DNA from: Selaginella moellendorffii
Lineage: Eukaryota > Plantae > Lycopodiophyta
Direction of reading: 5' to 3'
Length of the DNA stretch: 47,344 nucleotides
NCBI RefSeq assembly: GCF_000143415.4
Contig: NW_003314372.1
Location: 74,609 to 121,952 of the forward strand
Below, piece by piece: positions 3,967-34,102 of this stretch. The first letter of the stretch is position 1; the number at the start of each line of letters is the position of its first letter. Both the position numbers and the translations under genes were made by a program. Below the pieces are notes generated by a model. It made no database searches and was not told the origin of the DNA. It worked only from the letters and a program-made list of their open reading frames with translations.

Positions 3967-4728
3967 GGGTAATTTTACACACCAGTGTGTAGTAAGAGAT
4001 AGCTTCCTCCTGCACGATTTTACAATTGACATCTTTGTATTTATGCAAGGAAGTCAATAGCGGGTCTGCCTCCATGCATTTCTTATCACAAATAGAGCTG
4101 GCATTGGTTGCAACATACGTTCTTCTCTATGTTTTTCTTCTTCTTCTTCTTCTGGTTATGAGTGGTTTCATGTATATCCGTTTCAGCTTGTGTTGATCTT
4201 GGGGCTCAAGCAACCCCTTTTGATGGATCGAAGCCCTTATCTTTGAGCTTTTAGACAGATCGGACTCACTCAAGGTCGAATTGGAATTACATCATATCCA
4301 GGGTCCCCACTGTGATTTTGTAACACCATCTCCGACTTGCTACCGAAGGTGTCATTGGTATTCAGGAGAAGGTGAGTAGGTATGTGCAAGATGCTCCTCC
4401 GAATCTTCTGTATATCAATGCTACTTTTTGTGTTAAGCCTTATTCATGTGGCTGTAACATGACCTGTAGACCAAACTTATAATCACAAACTGCTTGCCAT
4501 AGGAAATTCAATCTCAAAGTGAATCCTACTATGCATGTAGCTTAGTTCAAATCGAAGTTGAGATAAATCTTCTAAGTGTGTGGGCTTTTTAATTTACAAT
4601 CCTCACCATTGTGATTGGAAAGAAAATGCTCCACGGGTAATGACCAAACACAAGTATCCCAGATCAGAACATGGTATCATGCGTTCCTCGAAGGATTGTT
4701 GGCACATCAAAACTGGTACAGCTTGAGC

Positions 4729-6825: not shown

Positions 6826-8334
6826 TTACAGGTAGTGGCTTGCAAGCCTTGGTGTTGCAAAAACTTCAAGTGGAACCTTTCGTCTCACCGCCACCCCTTC
6901 CGAGATCTCGTCCATGCTCAGCTCCTTGCCACTGACCTTCCACTCGAACCCATGGACGAGGCGAGCAAGAGTGTACGAAACCATGGCTACGCCAAGAGAC
7001 AATCCGGGACAGATCCTTCGACCAGATCCAAAAGGCAGCAGCTCAAAGTTCTTCCCCTTGAAGCTGATCGAGCTCTCCGCAAATCTATCCGGGTTGAAGA
7101 GATTGGGAGACTCCCACAAGCTTGGATCTCGTGCAATTGACCATACGTTGACCAAAACTCGCGAGTTCTTGGGGATCTTGTAACCGTTGACTAGGCAGTC
7201 TTGCGTTGAATGGTGAGGGAGTAGCATTGGCGCTGGCGGATGCAAGCGGAACACTTCGTTGACAACATTGTGGATGTAGCTAAGCTTGCAAAGATCGGCT
7301 TCCACCACCATCCACTCACGGCCCACAATTGTGTCAATCTCTTTTTGGGCTTTGATCATACATGTTGGACTGTTCATGAGCTCTGAAAGTGCCCACTCGG
7401 TAGTGATGGCCGAAGTTTCAGTACCAGCAATGATCATGTCCTTGCGAAGAGAAAATAAGGTTAGCATACCAAAGGAAATTAAACTTACCATGATCATTGC
7501 TTTCACGCATTGAACGTCAATTTCTCCTTGGTCTTCCAATGACAAAAGCACGTCAACAAAGTCACGCGCACGCTCTGATGACTTGAATTTAGACTTGTGC
7601 TCGTCCACGATCTCTTGCAAAAGCTGGTCCAGTTTCGTGTGAGCCGAGATCATCTTTCGGATCACGGGGCTGCCAAGCCACGAGAGGAATGGAAAGCAGT
7701 CGCCCAACACAAACGAGTCCATCAGCCGCATTACTTCTTCGATCAGCTCCACAGAGCCAGCGTGAAATTCTCTCCCCAACGTGATCGAGCTCACAACATT
7801 GAGGTTGAGGATGGACAAAAGGAATTTCATGTTGATTGAGGCTTTCCCGTTTTGACCATTATTGACTATAAAGTCAATGAGCTTCGAAACTTGCGTGTGC
7901 CTCACCATTCTGGATTCCTCGAGCCTTTTTGCAGTGAAGAGTTCCACAGTGGTGACCTTCCTCATCAATCTCCAATAGGGACCATAGCTGGTCCATCCCA
8001 AGTCCTTACCATTGTAGAACATGTACTTGGTTATAGATATGTTTGGCCTTGAAGCAAAGGCAAGATCTTGAGTGCACAGAACTTCTCTTGCAGCATCTGG
8101 GGAAGAGACCACAAGCGTTGGAGCAAAACCAAACCAGAGCAACATGACGGGGCCATATCTACTTGAGAGATCCGAGAGAGATTTGTGAGGAAGAACACCC
8201 AGCAAATGCAAGTGACCCAGAAGCGGCACTCTAGGCGGGCCTGGAGGAAGGCTTCGATCAACAATTTTCGTTAGAATCCTCCATAGAAGACCAAAAGACA
8301 GTGTAAGCAAGAACAGAGCTACAATACTTGCCAT
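6826..8334 (-). CDS. Cytochrome P450 (CYP71 clan) copy C, apparently intact, ~486 aa after splicing
   Basis: N-terminal membrane anchor, PPGPP hinge, WRLMRK, AGTETS, EVFR, PDRF, FGSGRRICPG. Single GT-AG intron 7441-7488 (48 nt) just before the I-helix, the conserved A-type P450 position. Confidence 0.93.
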   Translation of the reverse strand: MASIVALFLLTLSFGLLWRILTKIVDRSLPPGPPRVPLLGHLHLLGVLPHKSLSDLSSRYGPVMLLWFGFAPTLVVSSPDAAREVLCTQDLAFASRPNISITKYMFYNGKDLGWTSYGPYWRLMRKVTTVELFTAKRLEESRMVRHTQVSKLIDFIVNNGQNGKASINMKFLLSILNLNVVSSITLGREFHAGSVELIEEVMRLMDSFVLGDCFPFLSWLGSPVIRKMISAHTKLDQLLQEIVDEHKSKFKSSERARDFVDVLLSLEDQGEIDVQCVKAMIMVSLISFGMLTLFSLRKDMIIAGTETSAITTEWALSELMNSPTCMIKAQKEIDTIVGREWMVVEADLCKLSYIHNVVNEVFRLHPPAPMLLPHHSTQDCLVNGYKIPKNSRVLVNVWSIARDPSLWESPNLFNPDRFAESSISFKGKNFELLPFGSGRRICPGLSLGVAMVSYTLARLVHGFEWKVSGKELSMDEISEGVAVRRKVPLEVFATPRLASHYL

Positions 8335-9056: not shown

Positions 9057-9262
9057 GAACAGAGCTGTTTGTCTTTACCGTCTAAAGCATTACGGTCCAG
9101 GTAATGTTATTCTTGGACAATCAATGAACGAATTTTCCTTACGTTAGTTTGCAGCTCTTAGTGTTCTTGCAGAAATTCTGGAACATGGAGTGCGACAGTA
9201 TCCCGAACTCAGCATTGGTAGGTATGCTCTTTGTCACCACATTAGTTGCTTTTGCATATATT
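9057..9262 (+). pseudogene. IFT70: IFT70 small fragment (two partial exons)
   Basis: Near-identical to 4737-4942 (CLYRLKHYGP / ALSVLAEILEHGVRQYPELSIG). Confidence 0.8.
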
Positions 9263-9701
9263 CTTGCGTGTGCCTCACCATTCTTGATTCCTCGAGCCTT
9301 TTTGCAGTGAAGAGTTCCACAGTGGTGACCTTCCTCATCAATCTCCAATAGGGACCATAGCTGGTCCATGCCAAGTCCTTGTAGAACATGTACTTGGCTA
9401 AAGATATGTTTGGCCTTGAAGCAAAGGCAAGATCTTGAGTGCACAGAACTTCTCTTGCAGCATCTGGGGAAGAGACCACAAGCGTTGGAGCAAACCCAAA
9501 CCAGAGCAACATGACGGGGCCATATCTACTTGAGAGATCCGAGAGAGATTTGTGAGGAAGAACACCCAGCAAATGCAAGTGACCCAGAAGCGGCACTCTA
9601 GGCGGGCCTGGAGGAAGGCTTCGATCAACAATTTTCGTTAGAATCCTCCATAGAAGACCGAAAGAGAGTGTAAGCAAGGACAGAGCTACAATACTTGCCA
9701 T
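9263..9701 (-). pseudogene. P450 copy D, 5' fragment (~146 codons) fused to IFT70 sequence
   Basis: Matches the copy C N-terminus up to ...RMVRHTQ, then runs into antisense IFT70 sequence. Confidence 0.9.
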
Positions 9702-11404: not shown

Positions 11405-11637
11405 AAGCGCCTATGTCATTGAAAGGGCTTTGAAGGGTCTTGTTTTTCTGTGCTTCGTGGGAGGAGAGTTCTAGGCGGCTCAGCGTTGCGCGCTAGGTTT
11501 TCTAGGGATTGATTGGATCGGGAGCTGCGCCAGGGCGTGCCGCGGGCCGAGAGGTATGATCTTTTCTTTGGCACATTGACGCGCATTGATCGAGACGAGG
11601 ATTTCTTGGCCAGATTTGGGAGGAATTTCGGATTCCA

Positions 11638-14600
11638 ATGGCCGATGCGGAGAACTCGGATGCCGTCGTCGCACCGGCGCTCGAGAAGGACGAGGAGGTG
11701 AGATTCGCTGGATTCGTTCGCGTTTCCGTGCCGATCTGACGATTTTCTTCCACTGCAAACAGGAAACTACCGCTCTCAAGAGCAAGGTGACCGAGCTAGG
11801 GAAATTGCTGGCCGGCAAGGAAGAATTGGAGAAGGAACTAGAGACTGCCAAGGAGAAGGCTGGCGTTTTGTTTGAGTCGCTCGAGGATGCCAAGAAGAAT
11901 CTCGAGGATGCCAGCAAGAGAAGCGATGCTGCTGAATCCAAGCTCGCGGAATTGTTATCGTCGATGGAGAAGCACACATTGACCAAGGAGAAACTGGAGA
12001 AGGAAGTCGCCGATGCACAGAGCCTCGTGAAGGAGCTAGAAGAACAGTTGAAAGGATCGCAACTTAAGCTGGAAACCAGCGACAAGAATGCATCCATCGC
12101 CCTCCAGTCATCCAAAGAAGCTGCCGCTGCCCTCCAAGCACAAGTGGATGAGCTCACAGAAAAACTCCAACTTTCCAGTGATGCCGTCGTGGACTTGAAG
12201 AAGAACGAGGAATCGGCTGCCTTGGCTGCCAAGGAGACGGAAGGAAAGTTGCGGGCTTTGCAGCAAGATATGGAGAAGCTACAAGCGGACAAAGCTGCCG
12301 AGGTAAAAGCTGGCGAGGAAAAAGTCCAAGAGCTTTCCAGTCAGGTGGCAATCCTTACGGAAAAGGTTGAGAAAGCCGAGGCTGAAGTAGAAGCAAGCAA
12401 GTCCGCCGAGGCGTCACTCAATGGTCAGCTGGAGGCTTTGTCCAAAGCCAAGGGTGAGCTTGAGAAGCTGCTAGTGGACGCGGAGTCACGATCGAAAGAC
12501 GAAGCTGAAAGTCACAAAGTGGAGATCGAATCTGCTCGGGCGTCAATGGCTGAGTTGGAGGCTGAGGTGTCTGCTCTCAAAGCCTCGGTGAATGATCTCG
12601 AGAAGAATGCGAAGGATTCGCTCGAGCAGGTCGAGACGTATAAGAAGAACGTTTCGGTCCAAGAGGAACAGGGTAAGGAGTGGATGGAAAAAGCGAAAGA
12701 TGTTGAGCGACTTCTTCAAGAAGCTCAGGCGAGAGGAGATGCTGCTGAAGAAAGCAGCAAGTCATGGCAGGCCGAATGCGACGACTTGAAAGAAAAGGTT
12801 GCAGCCGCTTCCAAAATTGAGGCGATCTTGAAGGAAACAGAAGCTCAACTACAGCTTCTTCAACAGACGGCAGCTGACGCCGAGAGCAAGATCACGGCAT
12901 TGGAGTCCAAGTTGCGCTCTGCAGAGGACTCTGCCGCAGGCCACGAAGGTGATGCTCAAAAGCATCTGATGAAGGTGGCGGAACTTAGCGAGAGCCTGAC
13001 AAGTATCGAAGCCATTGCCGCTGCTTCTGAAGAAAAGCTTAAGTCGAGCGAGCTTGTGATTAGTGGCTTGCGGAGTGATTTGGAAGAGGCAAAGTCAACA
13101 GCAGAGAAACACGTGGCGACTGCAGCTGGGATTCAGGCAAAGCACGACGATCTTCAAAAGGAACTCCATGAGAAGCTGAGCCTGGCCGACGAGAAATACC
13201 AAAACTACGAGCGAAGCTTGGAAGAGTCCTCGGCAACGACCTCGCAGTTAAAAGAGTCTCTCCTGGCTCTTCAAAGTCAAGCTAACGAAGCCGCAGAATT
13301 GACTACAAAACTGCAAGCGGAGCTTCAAGATTCCAAGGACAGGGAAGCGAAGCTCGCTGAGCAGCTCGAAGCGTCCAGAGCAGCAGGTGAAAAGCAAGAG
13401 GCAGATTATAAAGCGGCATTGAATGAGCTTCAAGAATCGCTAACGAGACAGACGGAGGAGGCGTCCTCTAGACACGAAGCTCTTGCGCGAGATTTGAGCT
13501 CCGGCGTGGAAAGAGAGAAGGAACTTGAGCAGAAGCTCCGGACGGCGGAGGAGACGTCTGCGATTCACGAGAAGTCCAGCAACGAGTATAGCCAGAATTC
13601 TGCGCAGCTCGAGGACAAGCTGCGTGAAATCCAAGCAGAACTTTCCACTCACGCGGCAAAGGCTTCCGAGCTCGAAGGAGTTGTGGAGAGCTCTCGTCAA
13701 ATGCATGTGACACTCCAAGGGAGCGTCGAAGCTGCCGAGAGCAAATCGGCGCATTACGAAGAGCTCGCCAACGTCTCCAACAAGAAGGTTGCGGAGCTGG
13801 AAGAGGAGATGTCGAGTTTACATTCGAAACTGGCATCTCTAGAGAAGGTTTTGGCGAGTCAGGAAGAAACTCTGAAGGCGGCTCTTGACACCGAGGCGGA
13901 GCTACGTCAACAGCTCAAGCTCGCAGAAGAAACTTCAGCAATGCACGAGGCAACAGCAGGCGAACGAGAAAAAGTGGCCTCGGAAAGAGAGCAGGAGCTC
14001 TCGGCTGTGAACTCCAAGCTGACAGCTTTGAAAGAGACCTTGGCTGGCCAAGAGGAGACTCTCAAGTCGGCTTTCCAAGCCGAGGCAGAACTGCGAGGCA
14101 AGCTTTCGAGCGCAGAAGAAGCTACGGCAAAGCATCAGGCTGACGCAGGGGAGAGCCAGAGAGCCGCAGCGGAGAAGATCGCCGCTCTCGAGAGTACCAT
14201 CGAGAAGCTGGGGGAGAAGCTGGCTAATACGGAGGAAGTGCTCGAGGCCACCAAACAAGAGGCTGCGAGATCCAAAGACGCTGAAAGTAAGAAGGTGGAA
14301 GAGCTCGAGAAGGAAGCCGAGGCTATGGCATCAAACTTTCAAGCAGAGCTCGTGAAGGTCCAAGGTGTGGCGAGCTCTCTGGAGGAAAAACTGGACGAAG
14401 CAGCTCGACTCATTTCTGAGCAGGAGAAGACGATCTCGCGAATGCAGGAGAGCGAGGCCCAGCAGCGAGATGGCTACGCATCGGACACCAAGTCGCTCCT
14501 CGCCAAGCTAAGCGCGATGAGCGAAGAGTTTTCCAAGGAAAAGCAGCTGCTGGATAATGAGGTAACTCTTGCTTGGTCTTCTTCTTTCCTTCTAATACTT

Positions 14601-15048
14601 TGTGATGGACGCCAGATATCTAGTGTCAAAGGCGAGAGAGAGGATCTTCGTAAGAAGCTGAGTGAGATCCACGTAAATGGAGCGTTTGCCAAGAAGTTGG
14701 AGACTCGTCCGGCGGAGCCAGCCGTTGAAGAAGTCGAGGTAAGGAACCACACTTCTATAGTTTTCTCTCCTTCTTCCTCGCTTGCTGCTAAGACATGGAT
14801 TTTCATCTTCGTCACAGATGAGAAGTATCTCCAGAGATTTTGATACCGGAGCTCTCAAGGCAACGCCGAGGAGGAGGAAAGGAGCGGCTTCTTCCGCGGG
14901 AGTTGTGGAGGAGGAGACGAGCAGTGGCAAGGACAAAGTGGTGGGAAAGCAGGGCAAGGCTTCCTCCGGGTTCCTGGGAGCAACCATTGTCGCGGTTTCT
15001 GTGAGCTCCTTCTTCGTCGGCTTACTGGTGGACAGGAAACTATTTTGA
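11638..15048 (+). CDS. Long coiled-coil, C-terminally tail-anchored protein (PICC/PICL-like)
   Basis: Exons 11638-11697, 11763-14561, 14616-14738, 14818-15048, all GT-AG and phase 0. E/K/A/S-rich heptads with an internal ~63-aa repeat (QEETLK...EAELR). C-terminal SRDFD motif, basic patch and TM segment (FLGATIVAVSVSSFFVGLLV) with a short basic tail. Confidence 0.85.
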
Positions 15049-15230: not shown

Positions 15231-16070
15231 TCAGCAAGCTTGTATTTCTGGCAGGTCTGCCAGAAATCCCTCAATATCAAGAAACACATCGTTTAATTCT
15301 TGAGGTTGCCCCCAGTAATTGGTTTGCACATCTCCACCTTGAACCCCACCGACAAACTCCTGACTAACTCGATCAGCAAACAGTCCATCGCCAAGCTCAC
15401 TAGTTTGAGCAAACAGTTCTTGCTCACAATCACCAACGAACTCCTGACTAACTTGATCAGCAAACACTCCATCGCCAAGCTCGCTAGTTTGAGCAAACAC
15501 TTCTTGCACACAATCACCAACAGGCCCTTGACCCAAGCCTGGCAGAAGCTTCCAGTTTTGATCAAAACCCTCGTGAGAGAAAGGTTGGGCACAATCACCA
15601 ACACCATAACCTTGCTCCCAATAAATAGTTTGATCAAAACCCGCAACACAATCACCCATAACTTGAGATGATTCGCCTACAAATTCTTCCTGGACGACTG
15701 GAGCGATCTTGTCTACCCCATGGCTCTTTAAAGTTCTCTTATTTCCACCGGTGGGCGATAGCGATACGTCCCTTACCTTGCCACCTTGTGTCCATTTTCC
15801 CTTGCACGACCTGCAAATATAGCGCGGCTGGTCGCGCTTGCCAGTACTCTTCTCGTTGTTGTAGTAATCGAACCGCGTGTTGTAAGATTGGCACCTTGGG
15901 CACTGGTACACGTTGTCCGGAAGGTCGTGGTGCTCCCACACGCCGTACAAGTTTTGATCCCTCACCTCTTGGGCCGTGAGCTTGCAAGCCCTCTCGCTTC
16001 TCAGTCGACGCTTCTTTGTCGGCACCATGATACCGTCGTCTTCTCTACTTCTCTTGCTTGCTCTCGCCAT
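15231..16070 (-). CDS. Atypical Dof zinc-finger protein copy 1 (279 aa, intronless; 28-aa tail duplication)
   Basis: CPRCQSYNTRFDYYNN...QPRYICRSCKGKWTQGGKVRDV aligns to the Dof consensus CPRCxSxNTKFCYYNN...QPRYFCKxCRRYWTxGG. N-terminal basic NLS-like segment; acidic tail. Confidence 0.9.
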   Translation of the reverse strand: MARASKRSREDDGIMVPTKKRRLRSERACKLTAQEVRDQNLYGVWEHHDLPDNVYQCPRCQSYNTRFDYYNNEKSTGKRDQPRYICRSCKGKWTQGGKVRDVSLSPTGGNKRTLKSHGVDKIAPVVQEEFVGESSQVMGDCVAGFDQTIYWEQGYGVGDCAQPFSHEGFDQNWKLLPGLGQGPVGDCVQEVFAQTSELGDGVFADQVSQEFVGDCEQELFAQTSELGDGLFADRVSQEFVGGVQGGDVQTNYWGQPQELNDVFLDIEGFLADLPEIQAC

Positions 16071-16105
16071 AGCTCGTACGATCCTAAAGGACTTGACCTT
16101 ATTTA

Positions 16106-16128
16106 TTTATATATGCACTAAAGTAAAG
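16106..16128 (-). promoter_or_regulatory. TATA box (TATATAAA) and tandem TAAAG-TAAAG motif upstream of the Dof gene; conserved in all six copies
   Basis: tttatatatgcactaaagtaaagg lies 36-58 nt upstream of the Dof ATG in every unit. Confidence 0.65.
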
Positions 16129-16264
16129 GCTGGGTTAGCTTAAACAGCGTAGCTTCCCACTAATCCTGTGCGCTTTAAGGTAAGAATATCAGTCGAAAGA
16201 TGGATGGATATGCGGCATCCACATCGCAGCGGGCAAGAAGGAAAGAGTCTGTCGAGAAGCCAGG

Positions 16265-16960
16265 CATGCGCAAGTATTCTCATCACAATGTATGGCAAAT
16301 GGTTTGGCTGTAAATACAATCAAGGCGCTAAAGGTTGATGATGGAAAACTGGTGAAGCTCAAGATCTATCTATAGGCATTTCCATCCACGCTGTCCAGAG
16401 CGACGAGCTGTGGCTGTGACACAGATGCCTTTGTCAGCACCTTGTTGAAGATGGAAGTGCCGTGTTTGACAGGCGTTCATTCCTCCGACTATGATCCAGG
16501 CCTACACTGAAAAAACGGCGAACCACGCATTGTATCCAAGCATCAAACTGTTCCATGACACAGTTGAAAAATCCAGCCTGTCGAACACTCCACGAGCGTC
16601 GACACTCGGCTCGGGCTCGGCACACATGCGAATCAAAACCGCTCGGATTTTCACCGACTCAAACTTGATCACGCGTTTCTTCTCAGTCGCATCATCCAGT
16701 ACGCTATCTTCTTCGGTTGCCAGGAGGGAGCAGGCCTTCAACGCAGCCACAATCGTTCGAGGATGGCTGACAGTAAATAGTTCTCATGCGTGAAAACAAA
16801 TGGAGAGCGGAGCGCACGGGCTTGGTTCTCGAGTGGAGCTGTTTCCATTCATGGAACGATCCGGGGTTTTCTCACCTTTGTGGCTGCGTTGAAAGCTTGC
16901 GCTAGTTTGGATAGGCAAACTTGTCAAACTCCGTGCTTTAGAAGATGGCATGGCTATCGC
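16265..16960. pseudogene. Scrambled PLS-PPR gene fragment in the unit spacer (also ~19705-20040, ~23095-23760, ~26660-27360, ~30320-30720)
   Basis: + strand ILITMYGK, DGKLVKLK, SCGCDTDAFVSTLLKM, VAALKACASLD. - strand VAALKACSLLA...ARGVFDRLDFSTVSWNSLMLGY. Stops and frameshifts throughout. Confidence 0.75.
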
Positions 16961-17059
16961 TTTGGAACTCTTCTTTCGGATGGGGCTGAAAGGAGTCACG
17001 AGTGCTCATCCTCTCAACATGGTGACTTGTGAGGCAAACTCTTATTCCTGGTCTCCAGG

Positions 17060-17235
17060 AAATGATCGAAGACTCGTCTGGCGGAGCCAAACATAGAAGA
17101 ACTTGACGAGGTAACAAACACTTCTTAGTTTTCTCCTCTTGAGAAATGGATTTCCCTTGTTGTCACAGATCTACAGAGATTGTGATACTAGGGTTCTCAA
17201 GGCGGCTTCTCACGGAGGAGGCAACCACTGTCGCT
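17060..17235 (+). pseudogene. Decayed copy of the coiled-coil gene 3' end (exon 3 end, last intron, exon 4); also ~20145-20320, ~23830-24005, ~27460-27640, ~34620-34750
   Basis: agactcgtctggcggagcca...gag|gtaa...cacttcttagttttctcc...gtcacag|atctacagagattgtgatac...ctcaaggc...gcaaccactgtcgc aligns to 14701-14995. Confidence 0.8.
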
Positions 17236-18224
17236 TCACTTTTAGATATTCTATGTTATGTGCTTTTAATTACATGTACTTGCCAACATTTATGAGGAAT
17301 TTCGGGAACTCAGGATTATGTTATGTTAGAATATACTCAAACCACAAACCAAAATATTGCTTAATTTGATCCGCGGGCCCCACGACGGGATATGTTATGT
17401 TATGTTATCTACTTTAGAGGTCCCAAATGACCTAAAAAACATGAGCAAGGTGGTGGTACAGAATATGCCGCGGTATCAGACATTCTTTATACCTCCACCT
17501 TCCCGTTTTTTAAAGTAGCTGTAGCTCCCCTATCGTGGTGTTGGTAGGGACAGGGCAAAAGTATGTTGTACTACTGGTAGAAGTCACACATTCCAAGTCT
17601 GGATGCCGTTAATTACATTCTAGGGTGATGAGTTTATTCTCAATGTTCTTGCTCCTTGTTCTCTCAGTTGTCCCAGTGGCCTCATGCCTCTAGCATCTAA
17701 AAACATGTATTAGTGACAAGTAGGAACAATTGTAATAGCATAACTAACATTTTAGTGACTAGCTTTGTTGCAAGAGACCCTGATAGTGCGGGTACTTGCA
17801 CCAATCTTACATTATAAAAGCACTAAAGGTCGTGATTGTTTGATCTCCTTGAAAAAAGAGTAGTTTAGCTTTATTGGCTCCTAACCAGTCTTCGCTTGCC
17901 GAAATTCCTCTCAGATTGCTTATTTTACTTTTGGATAAAGTTCAAAATCGGAGAACTAGAATGGATCACCAAAAATTTCTTACAGTTAGAAGGAAGCAGA
18001 GAAGCTCCGGTCCTTGCCCTCAGGCTGACCAGATGTGCCTGGCAAATGCTGGCAGTGTGCTCCAGCAATCCATCTAGCATGGTGATGCTTGAGAACAGGC
18101 GGCAGAAATGCCTGACGACGAGGGTGTTCTAGTCAGTCCTACAAACCAGTCATGAAGAATCCTGGGGTTCGCATCGCAACAGATGCCCATGTTCAGCAAA
18201 AACTCCTAATTTGTATATTTTTAA

Positions 18225-18805
18225 ATGTGTGTGCAATATTTAGTTTGCTTAATAATAGTACTATTTCTATTTATTAGTGAATATACTTAAAATATACTTG
18301 GATACTCTGGGATATTCTACTATCTAATGGTTGTTATTCATTTAAATTAATCATGTATTTATAATTTATAAACATTCCTAAACACTTTCTAGCATATTTT
18401 AGTTTATTCTGAAAGCTGATATTTAATCTTGTGTTTATGAATTATAAACATGTTATAATCATAAAATTGATCAATATAATTAATGAATAATAAGCACTAT
18501 TATTAAGCAAACCAAGCTTTGCTGCATGCAATGCACAACAAATTTTTAATCTAGTTGATCAAATGGAAGTTTATAATTTATAAACACAAGATTAATCTTA
18601 TTATATATCAACCATTAAATAGTAGAATAAATTAGAATATAATAGAAACTGCTTGGGAAAGGTTATAATTTATAAATGTGTTTATAAATTATAAATTCAA
18701 GATTAAATATAAATTAATAACAACTGTTAAATGGTAGAATATCCCAGAAAATTCAAGTATATTCTAGATATATTCATTAACAAGTTTACTTAAGCAAACC
18801 AAAAA
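18225..18805. mobile_element. Nested pair of ~300-350 bp non-autonomous Helentron/Helitron2-like (HINE-like) elements
   Basis: A minus-strand element (5' end ttggtttgcttaag at ~18790-18805) is interrupted by a plus-strand family member ending in subterminal taagcaaacca, a hairpin and a T-run at 18547. Confidence 0.6.
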
Positions 18806-18859
18806 TTCTGAAAAAATTGGCAACTATATATAAGGGCTTTTGACAAAAATTTCCATGAA

Positions 18860-19612
18860 TCAGCAAGCTTGTATTTCTGGCAGGTCTGCCAAAAATCCCT
18901 CAATATCAAGAAACACATCATTGACTTCTTGAGGTTGCCCCCAGCAATTGGTTTGCACATCTCCACGTTGAACCAACTCCTGACTAACTTGATCAGCAAA
19001 CACTCCATCGCCAAGCTCGCTAGTTTGAGCAAACACTTCTTGCACACAATCACCAACAGGCCCTTGACCCAAGCCTGGCAGAAGCTCCCAATAACTGTTT
19101 TGATCAAAAGCCTCGTGAGATAAAGGTTGGGCACAATCACCAACACCATAACCTTGCTCCCAATAAGTAGTTTGATCAAAACCCACAACACAATTACCCA
19201 TAACTTGAGATAATTCGCCTACAAATTCTTCCTGGACGACTGGAGCGATCTTGTCTCCCCCATGGCTCTTTGAAGTTCTCTTATTTCCACCAGTGGGCGA
19301 TAGCGATACGACCCTTACCTGGCCACCTTGTGTCCATTTTCCCTTGCACGACCTACAAGCGTAGCGCGGCTGGTCGCGCTTGCCAGTACTCTTCTCGTTG
19401 TTGTAGTAATCGAACCGCGTGTTGTAAGATTGGCACCTTGGGCACTGGTACACGTTGTCCGGAAGGTCGTGGTGCTCCCACACGCCGTACAAGTTTTGAT
19501 CCCTCACCTCTTGGGCCGTGAGCTTGCAGGCCCTCTCGCTTCTCAGTCGACGCTTCTTTGTCAGCACCACTATACCATCGTCTTCTCTACTTCTCTTGCT
19601 TGCTCTTACCAT
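18860..19612 (-). CDS. Atypical Dof protein copy 2 (250 aa)
   Basis: Intact ORF with the same Dof-variant domain and a 3-aa in-frame tail deletion. Confidence 0.9.
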   Translation of the reverse strand: MVRASKRSREDDGIVVLTKKRRLRSERACKLTAQEVRDQNLYGVWEHHDLPDNVYQCPRCQSYNTRFDYYNNEKSTGKRDQPRYACRSCKGKWTQGGQVRVVSLSPTGGNKRTSKSHGGDKIAPVVQEEFVGELSQVMGNCVVGFDQTTYWEQGYGVGDCAQPLSHEAFDQNSYWELLPGLGQGPVGDCVQEVFAQTSELGDGVFADQVSQELVQRGDVQTNCWGQPQEVNDVFLDIEGFLADLPEIQAC

Positions 19613-21486
19613 AGCTCGTACGATCCTAAAGGACTTGACCCTATTTATTTATATATGCACTAAAGTAAAGGCTGGGTTAGCTTAAAAAGCGTAGATTCCC
19701 ACTAATAATACAATCAAGGCGCTAAAGGTTGATGATGGAAAACTGGTGAAGCTCAAGATCTATCTATAGGGCATTTCCATCCACGCTGTCCAGAGCGACG
19801 AGCTATGGCTGTGACACAGATGCCTTTGTCAGCACCTTGTTGAAGATGGAAGTGCCGTGTTTGACAGGCGTTCATTCCTCCGACTATGATCCAGGCCTAC
19901 CCTGAAACAACGGCGAGCCGCGCATTGTATCCAAGCATCAAACTGTTCCATGACACAGTTGAAAAATCCAGCCTGTCGAACACTCCACGAGCGTCGACAG
20001 CAAACTTGTCAAACTCCGTGCTTTAGAAGATGGCATGGCTATCGCTTTGGAACTCTTCTTTCGGACGGAGCTGAAAGGAGTCACGAGTGCTCATCCTTTC
20101 AACATGGTGACTTGTGGGGCAAACTCTTATTCCTGGTCTCCAGGAAATGATCGAAGACTCGTCTGGGGAGCCAAACGTTGAAGAACTTGACGAGGTAAGG
20201 AACACTTCTTAGTTTTCTCCTCTTCAGAAATGGATTGCCCTTGTTGTCACAGATCTACAGAGATTGTGATACTAGGGTTCTCAAGGCGGCTTCTCACGGA
20301 GGAGGCAACCACTGTCACTTCACTTTTAGATATTCTATGTTTAAAGTTCCGATTGCAATCTACTTGCCAACATTTATGAGGAGCTCAGAGGAATTTCCAG
20401 AACTCAAGATTATGTTATGTTAGAATACACACCAAAATATTGCTTAATTTGTTTATGTTAACTTATCTACTTTAGAGGTGGATATATTCTAAGTATATGC
20501 TCTCTAGATCCATATTTCTTGCTCCTTGTTCTCTCATTCTCTTCTTCAGTTGTCCCAGTATGCCTCCAGCAAGACCCTCTAAAAAACATGTATGAGTGAC
20601 AAGTAGGAACAATTGTAATAGCATAACTAGCAATTTAGTGGCTAGCTTTGTTGTCAGTCCACAAGAGACCCCGATAGTGCGGGTACCAATCTTCCCTTTT
20701 GTTATCAACAATATAAAAGCACTAAAGATCGTGATTGCTTTTGGAAAGTTTGATCTCCTTGAAAAAAGAGTAGTTTAGTTTTATTGGCTCCTAACCGCTC
20801 AGTCTTCGCTTGCCGAAATTCCTCTCAGATCGCTTATTTTACTTTTGGATAAAGTTCAAAATCAGAGAACTAGAATGGATCACCAAAGATTTCTTACAGT
20901 TAGAAGGAAGCAGAGTAGCTCCGGTCCTTGCCCTCAGGCTGACCAGGTAGAAGATTTGATGTGCCTGGCAAATGCTGGCAGTGTGCTCCAGCAATCCATC
21001 TAGCATGGTGGTGCTTGAGGACAGGCGGCAGAAATGCCTGACGATGAGGGTGTTCTAGTCAGTCCTACAAACCAGTCATGGAGAATCCTGGGGTGAGAAA
21101 TTTGGTCAGATGCCCATGTTCAGCAAAACCTCCTAATTTGTATATTTTTAAATGTGTGTTGCATGAATATTTAGTTTGCTTAGTAATAGTATTATTCCTA
21201 TTGGTTTGCTTCGTGGTAGTGAATATATTTAGAATATACTTAGATACTCTGGGAAACTAATGGCTGTTATTCATTTAAATTAATCATGTATTTATAATTT
21301 ATAAACATTCCTAAACGCTTTCTGGCATATTCTAGTTTATTCTGAAAGTTGATATTTAATCTTGTGTTTATAAATTATAAACATGTTATAATCATAACCT
21401 TTCAATTGATCAATATAATTAAAAAATAATAAGCATTATTATTAAGCAAACCAAGCTTTGCTGCATGCAATGCACAACAAATTTTT

Positions 21487-21839
21487 GGTTTGCTTAAGCA
21501 AACCTATAGGAGGATTGGGATGGTAATGAATATACCTAGAATATGCTTGAATATTCTAGGATATTCTACCATCTAACAGTTGTTATTTATTTAGATTAAT
21601 CTTGTATTTATAATTTATAAACATGTTTATAATTTATAAACTTTCTTAAACCCCTTCTAGTATATTCTTTTTGATTCTTTCATCTAATGGTTGATATGAA
21701 ATAAGATTAATCTTGTGTTTATAAATTACAAACATACTTATAATTATAAAGTTTATTTGATCAATTGGATTAATAAATAATAATAAAACTACTATTAAGC
21801 AAACCAAGCGTTGCTACATGCAAGGCGTAGCAATTTTTT
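21487..21839 (+). mobile_element. Best-preserved HINE-like element, inserted into the 3' T-run of another copy (21201-21486)
   Basis: 5' palindrome GGTTTGCTTAAGCAAACC (21487-21504); 3' subterminal TAAGCAAACCA; hairpin TTGCTAC-atgcaaggc-GTAGCAA (21811-21833); TTTTTT; no target-site duplication. Confidence 0.7.
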
Positions 21840-22140
21840 AATCTAGTTGATCAAATGGAAGTTTATAATTTATAAACACAAGATTAGTCTTATTATATAT
21901 CAACCATTAAATAGTAGAATAAATTAGAATAACTGCTTAGGAAAGTTTATATTTTATAAATGTGTTTATAAATTATAAATTCAAGATTAAATATAAATTA
22001 ATAACAACTGTTAAATGGTAGAATATCCCAGAAAATTCAAGTATATTCTAGATATTATCATTACCCTTACTTAAGAAAACCAAAAATTCTGAAAAAATTG
22101 GCAACTATGTATAAGGGCTTTTGAGAAAAATTTCCATGAA

Positions 22141-22902
22141 TCAGCAAGCTTGTATTTCTGGCAGGTCTGCCAGAAATCCCTCAATATCAAGAAACACATT
22201 ATTGAATTCTTGAGGTTGCCCCCAGCAATTGGTTTGCACATCTCCACGTTGAACCCCACCAACAAACTCCTGACTAACTTGATCAGCAAACACTCCATCG
22301 CCAAGCTCGCTAGTTTGAGCAAACACTTCTTGCACACAATCACCAACAGGCCCTTGACCCAAGGCTGGCAGAAGCTCCCAACAACTGTTTTGATCAAAAG
22401 CCTCGTGAGATAAAGGTTGGGCACAATCGCCAACACCATAACCTTGCTCCCAATAAATAGTTTGATCAAAACCCGCAACACAATCACCCATAACTTGAGA
22501 TGATTCGCCTACAAATTCTTCCTGGACGACTGGAGCGATCTTGTCTACCCCATGGCTCTTTAAAGTTCTCTTATTTCCACCGGTGGGCGATAGCGATACG
22601 TCCCTTACCTTGCCACCTTGTGTCCATTTTCCCTTGCACGACCTACAAATATAGCGCGGCTGGTCGCGCTTGCCAGTACTCTTCTCGTTGTTGTAGTAAT
22701 CGAACCGCGTGTTGTAAGATTGGCACCTTGGGCACTGGTACACGTTGTCGGGAAGGTCGTGGTGCTCCCACACGCCGTACAAGTTTTGATCCCTCACCTC
22801 TTGGGCCGTGAGCTTGCAAGCCCTCTCGCTTCTCAGTCGACGCTTCTTTGTCGGCACCATGATACCGTCGTCTTCTCTACTTCTCTTGCTTGCTCTCGCC
22901 AT
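22141..22902 (-). CDS. Atypical Dof protein copy 3 (253 aa)
   Basis: Intact ORF; N-terminal half identical to copy 1 at the protein level. Confidence 0.9.
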   Translation of the reverse strand: MARASKRSREDDGIMVPTKKRRLRSERACKLTAQEVRDQNLYGVWEHHDLPDNVYQCPRCQSYNTRFDYYNNEKSTGKRDQPRYICRSCKGKWTQGGKVRDVSLSPTGGNKRTLKSHGVDKIAPVVQEEFVGESSQVMGDCVAGFDQTIYWEQGYGVGDCAQPLSHEAFDQNSCWELLPALGQGPVGDCVQEVFAQTSELGDGVFADQVSQEFVGGVQRGDVQTNCWGQPQEFNNVFLDIEGFLADLPEIQAC

Positions 22903-25074
22903 AGCTCGTACGATCCTAAAGGACTTGACCTTATTTATTTATATATGCACTAAAGTAAAGGCTGGGTTAGCTTAAACAGCGTAGCTTCCCACTAATCCTG
23001 TGCGCTTTAAGGTAAGAATATCAGTCGAAAGATGGATGGATATGCGGCATCCACATCGCAGCGGGCAAGAAGGAAAGAGTCTGTCGAGAAGCCAGGCATG
23101 CGCAAGTATTCTCATCACAATGTATGGCAAATGGTTTGGCTGTAAATACAATCAAGGCGCTAAAGGTTGATGATGGAAAACTGGTGAAGCTCAAGATCTA
23201 TCTATAGGCATTTCCATCCACGCTGTCCAGAGCGACGAGCTGTGGCTGTGACACAGATGCCTTTGTCAGCACCTTGTTGAAGATGGAAGTGCCGTGTTTG
23301 ACAGGCGTTCATTCCTCCGACTATGATCCAGGCCTACACTGAAAAAACGGCGAACCACGCATTGTATCCAAGCATCAAACTGTTCCATGACACAGTTGAA
23401 AAATCCAGCCTGTCGAACACTCCACGAGCATCCACACTCGGCACAGGCTCGGCACACATGCGAATCAAAACCGCTCGGATTTTCACCGACTCAAACTTGA
23501 TCACGCGTTTCTTCTCAGTCGCATCATCCAGTACGCTATCTTCTTCGGTTGCCAGGAGGGAGCAGGCCTTCAACGCAGCCACAATCGTTCGAGGATGGCT
23601 GACAGTAAATAGTTCTCATGCGTGAAAACAAATGGAGAGCGGAGCGCACGGGCTTGGTTCTCGAGTGGAGCTGTTTCCATTCATGAAACGATCCGGGGTT
23701 TTCTCACCTTTGTGGCTGCGTTGAAAGCTTGCGCTAGTTTGGATAAGCAAACTTGTTGAAAGGAGTTACGAGTGCTCGTCCTTTCAACATGGTGACTTGT
23801 GAGGCAAACTCTTATTCCTGCTCTCCAGGAAATGATCGAAGACTCGTCTGGGGAGCCAAACGTAGAAGAACTTGACGAGGTAAGAAAAACTTCTTAGTTT
23901 TCTCCTCTTGAGAAGTGGATTTCCCTTGTTGTCACAGATCTGCAGAGATTGTGATACTAGGGTTCTCAAGGTGGCTTCTCACCGAGGAGGCAACCACTGT
24001 CGCTTCACTTTTAGATATTCTATGTTTAAAGTTCCGATTGCAATCTACTTGCCACAGAGGAATTTCGGGAACTCAAGATTATGCTATGTTAGAATATACT
24101 CAAACCACAAACCAAAATATTGCTTAATTTGTTTATGTTAACTTATCTACTTTAGAGGTGGATATATTCTAAGTATATGCTCTCTAGATCCATATTCTCC
24201 CATATGACCTAAAAAACATGAGAGTGTTGTTGTAGCTCCCCTATCGTGGTGTTGGTAGGGACAGGGCAAAAGTTGTACTACTGGTAGAAGTTACACATTC
24301 CAAGTCTGGATGCCGTTACATTCTAGGGTGATGAGTTTATTTTCAATGTTCTTGCTCCTTGTTCTCATTCTCTTTTTCAGTTGTCCCAGTGGTCTCCAAG
24401 ACCCTCTAAAAACATGTATTAGTGACAAGTAGGAACAATTGTAATAGCATAACTAGCATTTTAGTGATTAGCTTTGTTGTCAGTCCAAGTGTGTCTGATA
24501 GTGCGGGTACTTGCACCAATCTTCCCTTTTGTTATCAAAACAACATTATAAAAACACTAAAGGTCGTGATTGCTTTTGAAAGTTTGATCTCCTTGAAAAA
24601 AGAGAAGTTTAGTTTTTTTGGCTCCTAACCGCTCAGTCTTCGCTTGCCGAAATTCCTCTCAGATCGCTTATTTTACTTTTGGATAAAGTTCAAAATCGGA
24701 GAACTAGAATGGATCACCAAAGATTTCTTACAGTTAGAAGGAAGCAGAGTAGCTCCCGTCCTTGCCCTCAGGCTGACCAGGTGGAAGATTTGATAGTGTG
24801 CTCCAGCAATCCATCTAGCATGGTGGTGCTTGAGGACAGGCGGCAGAAATGCCTGACGACGAGGGTGTTCTACTCAGTCCCAAACCAGTCATGGAGAATC
24901 CTGGGGTGAGAAATTTGGTCCTCGAGATGCCCATGTTCAGCAAAAACTCCTGGTTTGTGTCATTCTCCCCTTCGTCATGACCCAGCCACATATGGCAGTT
25001 TCAAGAAGCTAAACAAGCCTCATATGAAGGGAGTCCAAAGCTAATTTGTATATTTTTATATGTGTGTTGCATGC

Positions 25075-25650
25075 ATAATATTTAGTTTGCTTAATAATAG
25101 TACTATTTCTATTTACTGGTTGGTAGTGAATATACTTAGAATATACTTGGATACTCTGGGATATTTTACTTTCTAATGGTTGTTATTCATTTAAATTAAT
25201 TATGTACTTATAATTTATAAACATTCCTAAACAATTTCTAGCATATTCTAGTTTGTTCTGAAAGTTGATATTTAATCTTGTGTTTATAAATTATAAACAT
25301 GTTATAATCATAACCTTCCAATTGATCAATATAATTAATAAATAATAAGCACTATTATTAAGCAAACCAAGCTTTGCTGCATGCAATGCACAACAAATTT
25401 TTAATCTAGTTGATCAAGTGGAAGTTTATAACTTATAAACACAAGATTAATCTTATTATATATCAACCATTAAATAGTAGAATAAATTAGAATAACTGCT
25501 TAGGAAAGTTTGTAACTTATAAATGTGTTTATAAATTATAAATTCAAGATTAAATATAAATTAATAACAACTGTTAAATTGTAGAATATCCCAGAAAATT
25601 CAAGTATATTCTAGATATATTCATTACCCTTACTTAAGAAAACCAAAAAT
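25075..25650. mobile_element. Nested HINE-like pair (unit 3 spacer)
   Basis: Same termini and hairpin as 18225-18805. Confidence 0.6.
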
Positions 25651-25703
25651 TCTGAAAAAATTAGCAACTATATATAAGGGCTTTTGACAAAAATTTCCAT
25701 AAA

Positions 25704-26465
25704 TCAGCAAGCTTGTATTTCTGGCAGGTCTGCCAGAAATCCCTCAATATCAAGAAACACATCATTGAATTCTTGAGGTTGCCCACAGCAATTGGTTTGC
25801 ACATCTCCACCTTGAACCCCACCAACAAACTCTTGACTAACTTGATCAGCAAACACTCCATCGCCAAGCTCGCTAGTTTGAGCAAACACTTCTTGCACAC
25901 AATCACCAACAGGCCCTTGACCCAAGCCTGGCAGAAGCTCCCAATAACTGTTTTGATCAAAAGCCTCGTGAGATAAACGTTGGGCACAATCACCAACACC
26001 ATAACCTTGCTCCCAATAAATAGTTTGATCAAAACCCGCAGCATAATCACCCATAACTTGAGATGATTCGCCTACAAATTCTTCCTGGACGACTGGAGCG
26101 ATCTTGTCTCCCCCATGGCTCTTTAAAGTTCTCTTATTTCCACCGGTGGGCGATAGCGATACGTCCCTTACCTTGCTACCTTGTGTCCATTTTCCCTTGC
26201 ACGACCTACAAGCGTAGCGCGGCTGGTCGCGCTTGCCAGTACTCTTCTCGTTGTTGTAGTAATCGAACCGCGTGTTGTAAGATTGGCACCTTGGGCACTG
26301 GTACACGTTGTCCGGAAGGTCGTGGTGCTCCCACACGCCGTACAAGTTTTGATCCCTCACCTCTTGGGCCGTGAGCTTGCAAGCCCTCTCGCTTCTCAGT
26401 CGACGCTTCTTTGTCGGCACCATGATACCGTCGTCTTCTCTACTTCTCTTGCTTGCTCTCGCCAT
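25704..26465 (-). CDS. Atypical Dof protein copy 4 (253 aa; WTQGS variant)
   Basis: Intact ORF; GG changed to GS after the zinc finger. Confidence 0.9.
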   Translation of the reverse strand: MARASKRSREDDGIMVPTKKRRLRSERACKLTAQEVRDQNLYGVWEHHDLPDNVYQCPRCQSYNTRFDYYNNEKSTGKRDQPRYACRSCKGKWTQGSKVRDVSLSPTGGNKRTLKSHGGDKIAPVVQEEFVGESSQVMGDYAAGFDQTIYWEQGYGVGDCAQRLSHEAFDQNSYWELLPGLGQGPVGDCVQEVFAQTSELGDGVFADQVSQEFVGGVQGGDVQTNCCGQPQEFNDVFLDIEGFLADLPEIQAC

Positions 26466-28689
26466 AGCCCGTACGATCCTAAAGGACTTGACCTTATTTA
26501 TTTATATATGCACTAAAGTAAAGGCTGGGTTAGCTTAAACAGCGTATATTCCCACTAATCCTGGACGGTTTAAGGTAAGAATATCAGTCGAAAGATGGAT
26601 GGATATGCGGCATCCACATCGCAGCGCGCAAGAAGAAAAGAGTCTGTCGAGAAGCCAGGCATGCGCAAGTATTCTCATCACAATGTATGGCAAATGGTTT
26701 GGCTGTAAATACAATCAAGGCGCTAAAGGTTGATGATGGAAAACTGGTGAAGCTCAAGATCAATCTATAGGCATTTCCATCCACGCTGTCCAGAGCGACG
26801 AGCTGTGGCTGTGACACAGATGCCTTTGTCAGCACCTTGTTGAAGATGGAAGTGCCGTGTTTGACAGGCGTTCATTCCTCCGACTATGATCCAGGCCTAC
26901 ACTGAAAAAACGGCGAGCCACGCATTGTATCCAAGCATCAAACTGTTCCATGACACAGTTAAAAAATCCAGCCTGTCGAACACTCCACGAGCGTCCACAC
27001 TCGGCACTCGGCACGGGCTCGGCACACATGCGAATCAAAACCGCTCGGATTTTCACCGACTCAAACTTGATCACGCGTTTCTTCTCAGTCGCATCATCCA
27101 GTACGCTATCTTCTTCGGTTGCCAGGAGGGAGCAGGCCTTCAACGTAGCCACAATCGTTCGAGGATGGCTGACAGTAAATAGTTCTCATGCGTGAAAACA
27201 AATTGAGAGCGGAGCGCACGGGCTTGGTTCTCGAGTGGAGCTGTTTCCATTCATGGAACGATCCGGGGTTTTCTCACCTTTGTGGCTGCGTTGAAAGCTT
27301 GCGCTAGTTTGGATAGGCAAACTTGTCAAACTCCGTGCTTTAGAAGATGGCATGGCTATCGCTTTGGAACTCTTCTTTCGGATGGAGCTGAAAGGTGTCA
27401 CGAGTGCTCATCCTCTCAACATGGTGACTTGTGAGGCAAACTCTTATTCCTGGTCTCCAGGAAATGATCGAAGACTCGTCTGGCGGAGCCAAACATAGAA
27501 GAACTTGACGAGGTAAGAAACACTTCTTAGTTTTCTCCTCTTGAGAAATGGATTTCCCTTGTTGTCACAGATCTACAGAGATTGTGATACTAGGGTTCTC
27601 AAGGCGGCTTCTCACAGAGGAGGCAACCACTGTCGCTTCACTTTTAGATATTATGTTTTGTGCTTTTAATTACATGTACTTGCCAACATTTATGGAATTT
27701 CGGGAACTCAAGATTATGTTATGTTAGAATATACTCAAACCACAAACCAAAATAGCTTAATTTGATCGGCGGGCCCCACGACGGGATATGTTATGTTATG
27801 TTATCTACTTTAGAGGTTATGCTCTCTAGATCCATATTCTCCCAAATGACCTAAAAAACATGAGCAAGGTGGTGGCACAGAATATGCCGCGGTATCAGAC
27901 ATTCTTTATACCTCCACCTTCCCGTTTTTTAAAGTAGCTGTAGCTCCCCTATCGTGGTGTTGGTAGGGACAGGGCAAAAGTATGTTGTACTACTGGTAGA
28001 AGTCACACATTCCAAGTCTGGATGCCGTCAATTACATTCTAGGGTGATGAGTTTATTCTCAATGTTCTTGCTCCTTGTTCTCTCATTCTCTTCTTCAGTT
28101 GTCCCAGTGGCCTCATGCCTCTAGCATCTAAAAACATGTATTAGTGACAAGTAGGAACAATTGTAATAGCATAACTAACATTTTAGTGACTAGCTTTGTT
28201 GTCAGTCCACAAGAGACCCTGATAGTGCGGGTACTTGCACCAATCTTACATTATAAAAGCACTAAAGGTCGTGATTGCTTTTGGAAAGTTTGATCTCCTT
28301 GAAAAAAGAATAGTTTAGTTTTTTTGGCTCCTAACCAGTCTTCGCTTGCCGAAATTCCTCTCAGATTGCTTATTTTACTTTTGGATAAAGTTCAAAATCG
28401 GAGAACTAGAATGGATCACCAAAGATTTCTTACAGTTAGAAGGAAGCAGAGAAGCTCCGGTCCTTGCCCTCAGGCTGACCAGGTAGAAGATTTGATGTGC
28501 CTGGCAAATGCTGGCAGTGTGCTCCAGCAATCCATCTAGCATGGTGATGCTTGAGAACAGGTGGCAGAAATGCCTGACGACAAGGGTGTTCTAGTCAATC
28601 CTACAAACCAGTCATGAAGAATCCTGGGGTGAGAAATTTTGCCCATGTTCAGCAAAAACTCCTAATTTGTATATTTTTAAAATGTGTGT

Positions 28690-29420: not shown

Positions 29421-29472
29421 CTGAAAAAATTGGCAACTATATATAAGAGCTTTTGACAAAAATTTCCATGAA

Positions 29473-30225
29473 TCAGCAAGCTTGTATTTCTGGCAGGTCT
29501 GCCAGAAATCCCTCAATATCAAGAAACACATCATTGAATTCTTGAGGTTGCCCCCAGCAATTGGTTTGCACATCTCCACGTTGAACCTCACCAACAAACT
29601 CCTGACTAACTTGATCAGCAAACACTCCATCGCCAAGCTCGCTAGCTTGAGCAAACACTTCTTGCACACAATCACCAACAGGTCCTTGACCCAAGGCTGG
29701 CAGAAGCTCCCAACAACTGTTTTGATCAAAAGCCTCAGGTTGGGCACAATCACCAACACCATAACCTTGCTCCCAATAAATAGATTGATCAAAACCCACA
29801 ACACAATTACCCATAACTTGAGATAATTCGCCTACAAATTCTTCCTGGACGACTGGAGTGATCTTGTCTCCCCCATGGCTCTTTGAAGTTCTCTTATTTC
29901 CACCAGTGGGCGATAGCGATACGTTCCTTACCTTGCCACCTTGTGTCCATTTTCCCTTGCACGACCTACAAGCGTAGCGCGGCTGGTCGCGCTTGCCAGT
30001 ACTCTTCTCGTTGTTGTAGTAATCGAACCGCGTGTTGTAAGATTGGCACCTTGGGCACTGGTACACGTTGTCCGGAAGGTCGTGGTGCTCCCACATGCCG
30101 TACAAGTTTTGATCCCTCACCTCTTGGGCCGTGAGCTTGCAGGCCCTCTCGCTTCTCAGTCGACGCTTCTTTGTCAGCACCATGATACCATCGTCTTCTC
30201 TACTTCTCTTGCTTGCTCTCGCCAT
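29473..30225 (-). CDS. Atypical Dof protein copy 5 (250 aa)
   Basis: Intact ORF with a 3-aa in-frame deletion (LSH). Confidence 0.9.
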   Translation of the reverse strand: MARASKRSREDDGIMVLTKKRRLRSERACKLTAQEVRDQNLYGMWEHHDLPDNVYQCPRCQSYNTRFDYYNNEKSTGKRDQPRYACRSCKGKWTQGGKVRNVSLSPTGGNKRTSKSHGGDKITPVVQEEFVGELSQVMGNCVVGFDQSIYWEQGYGVGDCAQPEAFDQNSCWELLPALGQGPVGDCVQEVFAQASELGDGVFADQVSQEFVGEVQRGDVQTNCWGQPQEFNDVFLDIEGFLADLPEIQAC

Positions 30226-33163: not shown

Positions 33164-33340
33164 GAGAGAGAAAGAAAAAGTATATATTTTTTCTTATCTT
33201 TGCGGCTTTTCATATTCTAAATTATTTGACATACAGATTGAAATATAATTCTATGTAGGCTTCTACTCATCAAACAAATGAAAACTCTCTGGAGACCCTG
33301 GGATCCAACTATAAATTCTTTTAAAAAAAATTTCCATGAA

Positions 33341-34102
33341 TCAGCAAGCTTGTATTTCTGGCAGGTCTGCCAGAAATCCCTCAATATCAAGAAACACATC
33401 GTTGAATTCTTGAGGTTGCCCCCAGCAATTGGTTTGCGCATCTCCACCTTGAACCCCACCAAGAAACTCCTGACTAACTTGATCAGCAAACACTCCATCG
33501 CCAAGTTCACTAGTTTGAGCAAACAGTTCTTGCTCACAATCACCAACAGGCCCTTGACCCAAGCCTGGCAGAAGCTCCCAATAACTGTTTTGATCAAAAG
33601 CCTCGTGAGATACAGGTTGGGCACAATCACCAACACCATAACCTTGCTCCCAATAAGTAGTTTGATCAAAACCCACAACAAAATCACCCATAGCTTGAGA
33701 TGATTCGCCTACAAATTCTTCCTGGACGACTGGAGCGATCTTGTCTCCCCCATGGCTCTTTAAAGTTCTCTTATTTCCACCAGTGGGCGATAGCGATACG
33801 TCCCTTACCTTGCCACCTTGTGTCCATTTTCCCTTGCACGACCTACAAGCGTAGCGCGGCTGGTCGCGCTTGCCAGTACTCTTCTCGTTGTTGTAGTAAT
33901 CGAACCGCGTGTTGTAAGATTGGCACCTTGGGCACTGGTACACGTTGTCCGGAAGGTCGTGGTGCTCCCACACGCCGTACAAGTTTTGATCCCTCACCTC
34001 TTGGGCCGTGAGCTTGCAGGCCCTCTCGCTTCTCAGTCGACGCTTCTTTGTCAGCACCACGATACCATCGTCTTCTCTACTTCTCTTGCTTGCTCTCGCC
34101 AT
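33341..34102 (-). CDS. Atypical Dof protein copy 6 (253 aa)
   Basis: Intact ORF; like copy 1, it is convergent with a coiled-coil gene 3' end. Confidence 0.9.
   Translation of the reverse strand: MARASKRSREDDGIVVLTKKRRLRSERACKLTAQEVRDQNLYGVWEHHDLPDNVYQCPRCQSYNTRFDYYNNEKSTGKRDQPRYACRSCKGKWTQGGKVRDVSLSPTGGNKRTLKSHGGDKIAPVVQEEFVGESSQAMGDFVVGFDQTTYWEQGYGVGDCAQPVSHEAFDQNSYWELLPGLGQGPVGDCEQELFAQTSELGDGVFADQVSQEFLGGVQGGDAQTNCWGQPQEFNDVFLDIEGFLADLPEIQAC

Follow-up and report, generated by a model that had tools for sequence, protein, structure and literature searches.

The question raised by this locus is whether a zinc finger encoded in the lycophyte Selaginella moellendorffii, in which the cysteine pairs are set farther apart than in any standard Dof domain, belongs to the Dof family at all and, if it does, whether it would still read the Dof target. 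Canonical Dof domains have the pattern C-x2-C-x21-C-x2-C and bind (T/A)AAAG. To our knowledge, few DNA-binding domains of plants are as uniform as Dof, in which the x21 spacing and the RRYW motif are nearly fixed from algae to angiosperms. The finger in question is encoded on the minus strand of a 47,344-nt stretch of genomic DNA (hereafter, the window), in an intronless, uninterrupted ATG-to-stop ORF of 279 codons plus the stop (15231..16070), denoted c1 here because it is the first of several copies.

Translation of c1 yields a protein with an NLS-like N-terminus, a pre-finger extension, a Dof-type zinc ribbon and an acidic/hydrophobic C-terminal tail. The finger spans residues C57-V102 (15765..15902, minus strand, as are all features of c1 given below; the C57 codon is at 15900-15902), and its Cys4 core, C57-x2-C60-x25-C86-x2-C89 (15804..15902), reads in order C57-P-R-C60, 25 residues (QSYNTRFDYYNNEKSTGKRDQPRYI), C86-R-S-C89 and then K-G-K-W93. 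The original prediction had reported a C-x2-C-x25-C-x2-C finger at 15765-15902 in which FCY has become FDY and RRYW has become KGKW, and the translation bears this out in every detail: the interval corresponds exactly to residues 57-102, the cysteines are C57, C60, C86 and C89, the FCY position is occupied by F67-D68-Y69, with D68 (15867..15869) aligned to the conserved fifth, non-ligand Cys of Dof domains, and RRYW is replaced by KGKW. A codon alignment with an x21 sister gene from the same species, discussed below, traces the additional length to a 12-nt in-frame insertion, AAG AGT ACT GGC, which encodes K74-S75-T76-G77 (15840..15851). A second in-frame insertion, S103-L104-S105 (15756..15764), was overlooked in the prediction; it directly follows the finger, ahead of the basic P-x-G-G tail that is conserved in the domain.

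A comparison of c1 with Pfam identifies the Dof profile, PF02701, with a score of 86.5 bits, well above the gathering score of 26.6 bits (E 1.4e-24); the alignment covers residues 53-116 and profile positions 2-58 of 59. The four Cys columns of the finger (C57, C60, C86 and C89, forming two CxxC pairs) are invariant in 79 Dof domains, and the host, S. moellendorffii, is a green plant, as expected of a Dof protein; the canonical CX2CX21CX2C spacing is lacking, with 25 residues between the Cys pairs. Because the Pfam match reaches 86.5 bits and the same finger is found six times in the window, all on the minus strand, against an expectation of 0, the c1 finger is a true Dof homologue and not a chance Cys pattern, and c1 is a variant of a known family rather than a new kind of protein.

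The structural evidence points the same way. The finger sequence matches PDB entry 8xuf, the CDF1 Dof domain, with 47 bits. An AF2 model of residues 40-120, built from a 79-sequence alignment, has a mean pLDDT of 68.8, with block means of 76-88 over most of the core and 70 in the insertion loop, and contains strands at residues 65-71, 81-86 and 92-94; the inserted K74-G77 is placed in the hairpin turn between the first two of these. The sole significant PDB match of this model is 8xuf_C (entry title, 'CDF1 Dof domain in palindromic-bound complex with DNA duplex'), with a TM score of 0.79 by target, an rmsd of 2.5 A and a probability of 1.00, followed by weak TFIIS-type zinc ribbons. Thus, the structure prediction that had been proposed as a check resembles a Dof zinc ribbon, and the c1 finger, as modelled, has the Dof-type zinc-ribbon fold.

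Within the Dof family, the variant is rare. An exhaustive phmmer search with residues 1-120 against 1.84 billion representatives detects 2368 matches, among which the sole close cluster is the c1 family itself, at 252 bits, with the next genuine Dofs at 110 bits or less. Two entries that rank above these Dofs and show many matched stretches, P0020 and P0023, are unrelated repetitive proteins and were discarded. Among the best 150 of the 2368 representatives, x25 is confined to the family's own cluster; the others have x21 and, in a few cases, x18. When the finger is aligned with non-Selaginella Dof domains, none of the 75 examined contains the four-residue insertion, and the substituted columns are similarly distinctive: the D68 column is C in 59 of the 75 and D in none; the G91 column is R in 69/75 and G in none; the K92 column has Y in 37/75, H in 18/75 and K in none. 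The fifth-Cys column is otherwise variable, with L, R, K, S and other residues, which fits the view that this Cys does not coordinate zinc. All matches of a word-index protein search are from S. moellendorffii, namely, three clusters that are 83-85% identical in BLASTP local alignments (93-94% in the MAFFT alignment) and the more distant protein P0004. Within the protein collections searched, the x25 family was seen in S. moellendorffii only.

Outside the finger, c1 contains several further features. The pre-finger extension, E26-Q56 (15903..15995), is clade-specific: it is conserved between the array genes and P0004 and has no counterpart in other Dofs (alignment columns 1-17, 75 non-Selaginella domains). 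It includes the segment A28-P51, ACKLTAQEVRDQNLYGVWEHHDLP, which corresponds to the conserved C/H-bearing segment predicted ahead of the finger and is indeed shared by the array genes and P0004. The possibility that this segment forms a second metal site was considered and rejected, only C29 and H48 being conserved in P0004. Further upstream, a bipartite-NLS-like motif can be read from the sequence, K6-R7 ... K19-K20-R21-R22 with an 11-residue spacer (16005..16055), which, judging by the classical bipartite NLS consensus, would direct the protein to the nucleus. The acidic/hydrophobic C-terminal region, residues 117-279 (15234..15722), is fast-evolving by both alignment and omega, and might serve in activation. 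It contains a 28-codon tandem duplication (15369-15452) without a counterpart in the five other copies in the window; the same duplication recurs in a 279-aa gene at L001:10001-10840. A full-length AF2 model based on the shallow family alignment has a pLDDT of 35, too low to inform on the regions before the finger and at the C-terminus.

The sister gene, P0004 (XP_024523888.1, 'DOF3.1-like'), is a single-copy, intronless gene of S. moellendorffii at a locus different from that of the array (L005:6001-6705, GL377568.1). The c1 and P0004 proteins are 41% identical in the BLASTP local alignment and 53% identical in the MAFFT alignment. Like the array genes, P0004 is intronless, has lost RRYW and carries FDY, CPRCQSYNTRFDYYNNE and the pre-finger extension; it differs from them in having x21, KKQW instead of KGKW, no SLS insertion and another C-terminal region, as well as in its location outside the array. 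In a tree of the domains, the x25 genes and P0004 form one clade with an SH-like support of 0.97 and a stem of 0.69 substitutions per site; the place of this clade among other Dofs has a support of 0.06, and the nearest non-Selaginella domains come from anonymous transcript contigs. This phylogeny, together with the restriction of the clade to S. moellendorffii and the purifying selection on the finger described below, substantiates the suggestion of a divergent Dof subfamily. The combination of FDY with x21 in P0004, which the original prediction did not take into account, indicates that FDY and x25 are separate events and that x25 is a later insertion. The lineage would first have exchanged the non-ligand fifth Cys (FCY to FDY) along with the RRYW recognition motif, and the 12-nt in-frame insertion would then have extended the beta-hairpin turn, taking the spacing from x21 to x25. 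P0004 likely represents the progenitor type of the array family.

Genomic context reveals a compact tandem array. Six intact ORFs of 250-279 codons, each with the x25 finger, follow one another on the minus strand at intervals of 3.3-3.9 kb (about 3.5 kb): c1, c2 (18860..19612, 250 aa), c3 (22141..22902, 253 aa, identical to the S. moellendorffii database protein P0018), c4 (25704..26465, 253 aa), c5 (29473..30225, 250 aa) and c6 (33341..34102, 253 aa, identical to the S. moellendorffii database protein P0008). Over 15231-34102, whole units repeat, spacers included, with 85-99% identity and with one atypical Dof ORF per unit. The ORFs in the spacers have no match in Pfam, the spacers have none in Rfam, and no other recognisable gene is present in the units; these searches led to the rejection of transposon cargo or a second gene as a component of the repeat. 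The genes flanking the array are ordinary plant genes for cytochrome P450 copies, an LRR protein and PPR proteins (3376-4032, 6826-8334, 9234-9701; 37524-38915; 42592-45274). The 3' part of a neighbouring gene for a long coiled-coil protein (14000-14853) is duplicated next to the sixth copy (32124-32968) with 98-100% identity, the respective ORFs being 11586-14843 and 30808-32958, both on the plus strand; hence, a larger segmental duplication overlies the array.

In the public assembly (GCA_000143415.2), at least 16 family members are annotated on seven scaffolds, and UniProt labels the array family 'Dof-type domain-containing protein'. The public gene collection has no entry for the exact 279-aa product of c1; the nearest recorded product is SELMODRAFT_425596 (P0011), also of 279 aa and 95% identical, which is encoded on another scaffold in a context syntenic with that of c1 (P450 / coiled-coil / Dof) and probably represents the other haplotype or a segmental duplicate. 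A full-length public product is lacking for four of the six intact ORFs (15231-16070, 18860-19612, 25704-26465 and 29473-30225), and the public models of the family include truncated ones of 62-64 aa and 237 aa, which makes the array look under-annotated. On other scaffolds, shortened fragments of the Dof finger are found beside intact family members (L003:11292-11687 and L002:18801-19004), and some gene calls of the family are only 62-68 aa long. Such fragments point to birth-and-death turnover of the array, so that any single copy, c1 included, could be dispensable.

The pattern of substitutions indicates that the finger is maintained by selection. The window and four further scaffold stretches together contain 13 full-length x25 ORFs; all are intact, and every indel among them is in frame. 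When changes are counted by parsimony on the tree of these ORFs, the ratio of nonsynonymous to synonymous changes is 8:8 in the finger (omega 0.27; P = 0.009 under neutral expectation), 19:16 in residues 1-116 (P = 0.0008) and 55:24 in the C-terminal region (omega 0.63), numbers that are small and that come from arrays where possible gene conversion would break the independence assumed by the tests; the omega of the pre-finger extension is 0.35. Pairwise sums over the six window copies, 0.38 versus 1.04 in the C-terminal region, agree with the tree counts. In comparison with P0004, the finger has a dN/dS of 0.19 at a dS of 0.77, which implies long-term constraint. D68, E73, KSTG, G91 and K92 are fixed in every copy. 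Thus, the finger is under purifying selection, with an omega of about 0.2-0.3, and the tail evolves fast and near-neutrally (0.63-1.04).

What this constraint preserves is best approached through the DNA-contacting residues of CDF2 from Arabidopsis. In EMSA experiments with this protein, the four Cys are essential for DNA binding, the K166A and R170A substitutions strongly reduce it, Y171A and W172A abolish it, and neither K167A nor Q169A affects it detectably (Gao et al. 2022, PMC9477738). In the alignment, CDF2 K166 corresponds to R87 of c1, K167 to S88, Q169 to K90, R170 to G91, Y171 to K92 and W172 to W93. Of the four side chains validated as DNA-binding in CDF2, c1 therefore has two replaced, by G91 and K92 (15795..15800, at the positions of R170 and Y171 in the mutagenesis of PMC9477738), and two kept, as R87 and W93, although alanine scans of CDF2 are uninformative on the effect of Gly and Lys in a different background. 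Also retained are the four Cys, the QPR motif, T94, G96-G97 and R100, with R87 providing a basic residue after the third Cys, and basic residues are abundant at and around the finger (K74, K78, R79, R87, K90, K92, K98 and R100).

Taken together, these features are best compatible with the hypothesis, to which we would assign a probability of roughly 60%, that the array encodes a selectively maintained, young, Dof-derived family of S. moellendorffii with a DNA-binding finger in which the read-out of AAAG is altered. The protein appears to be laid out as a nuclear transcription factor, with the NLS-like motif at the N-terminus followed by the finger and the acidic/hydrophobic tail. DNA binding would persist through R87, W93 and the basic residues, and the canonical (T/A)AAAG read-out would be lost, weakened or switched to another motif, given that G91 and K92 sit at two positions needed for canonical Dof binding. 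The altered specificity suggested in the original prediction is accordingly plausible on the basis of these two residues. A bolder version, that the x25/KGKW finger reads a non-AAAG motif and that the family is a young, tandemly amplified, neo-functionalised transcription-factor lineage with at least 13 intact copies and confined to a single spikemoss, can be put forward only tentatively; if it is true, the array would amount to a natural experiment on altering the specificity of a one-finger DNA-binding domain by an insertion in a loop and two swaps of recognition residues.

Several other interpretations have to be weighed against an altered read-out. The proteins might be functionally ordinary Dofs in which the longer loop and the FD and KGKW substitutions are tolerated and AAAG-type sites are still bound. 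The retention of the four Cys, QPR, W93, T94, G96-G97, R100 and R87, the placement of the insertion in a hairpin turn by the model, and the natural variability of the fifth Cys and of the Y position (H in 18/75) in other Dofs would all fit this scenario, but the equivalent of R170, an R in 69/75 domains, is G here, and in CDF2 the R170A substitution strongly reduces binding and Y171A abolishes it, so that we regard an ordinary function as somewhat unlikely.

Conversely, the finger might have given up DNA binding and survive as a protein-protein interaction module, the protein titrating canonical Dofs or their partners or acting on them in a dominant-negative manner, as the original prediction also envisaged. 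Dof domains are described as bifunctional, making both DNA contacts and protein contacts, and the finger, with two DNA-binding positions replaced, is still under purifying selection; the basic residues around the finger are, however, kept or even added, the acidic tail resembles an activation region, and no EAR-type repression motif is apparent on reading the c1 sequence; we regard this explanation as quite unlikely. Finally, the array could be recently amplified and dispensable, its ORFs being intact only through youth or gene-conversion homogenisation and on their way to becoming pseudogenes. The window copies differ by a dS of only 0.03-0.10, whole units of 3.3-3.9 kb are 85-99% identical, the omega of the C-terminal region is near 1, and shortened fragments exist. 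An omega of 0.27 in the finger within the family and of 0.19 in the comparison with the older paralog P0004, along with 13/13 full-length copies that are intact and differ by in-frame indels only, argue against such decay, which we consider highly improbable. A maintained finger with altered AAAG read-out remains our preferred reading.

A literature search yielded no paper describing the x25/FDY/KGKW variant or naming the array genes, a search on the SELMODRAFT identifiers likewise found none, and one on the fifth Cys and redox gave no usable result. A 2024 review lists 37 Dofs in S. moellendorffii, 34 after filtering, of which 25 are ungrouped (PMC10842470, Table S4); another article (PMC9897228) credits Shigyo et al. 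2007 with an earlier figure of 12. The present analysis suggests that much of this large ungrouped set may consist of recent tandem copies of one divergent gene type. The expectation that such proteins are missed by strict Dof surveys holds for literal CX2CX21CX2C filters, which undercount lycophyte Dofs, but not for HMM-based surveys, given the Pfam score, or for UniProt, where the family is already labelled as Dof-type. The wider biological importance is limited, the family having been seen in one species only; its value is that a maintained lineage with a longer zinc-ribbon hairpin and two swapped AAAG-binding residues amounts to a ready-made test of Dof specificity, made timely by the 8xuf Dof-DNA crystal structure.

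Comparison with known systems puts these features in perspective. With the canonical Dofs (PF02701; Arabidopsis CDF1 and CDF2; 8xuf), c1 shares a homologous zinc ribbon with four Cys ligands and the motifs CPRC, NT(K/R)F, YYNN, QPR, W-T-x-G-G and the trailing basic G-G-x-(K/R)-(K/R); like them, it is plant-specific, combines the finger with a variable disordered remainder and, as in many Dofs, is encoded by an intronless gene. It differs from the canonical Dofs in having x25 instead of x21, D for the fifth Cys, G-K for R-Y and E73 for Y, the extra SLS after the finger, a conserved pre-finger extension of about 30 residues and an NLS-like motif that is N-terminal. Another point of reference is provided by multi-finger or degenerate Dof-like proteins (KAF5199660.1 from Thalictrum, P0021, and the anonymous P0025, P0027, P0028 and P0032). 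Proteins of this kind (P0021, P0024-P0028, P0032 and P0092) contain two to four degenerate fingers; their sources are Thalictrum and anonymous contigs of transcript or metagenome origin, and JGI labels some of them 'transposase-like'. Like c1, the multi-finger proteins lack the fifth Cys and RRYW and keep the Cys4 ribbon and QPR(Y/H), which indicates that both positions can drift in Dof-derived fingers; in contrast to c1, they have x21, two to four fingers per protein and often F in place of W, and they fall outside the Selaginella clade.
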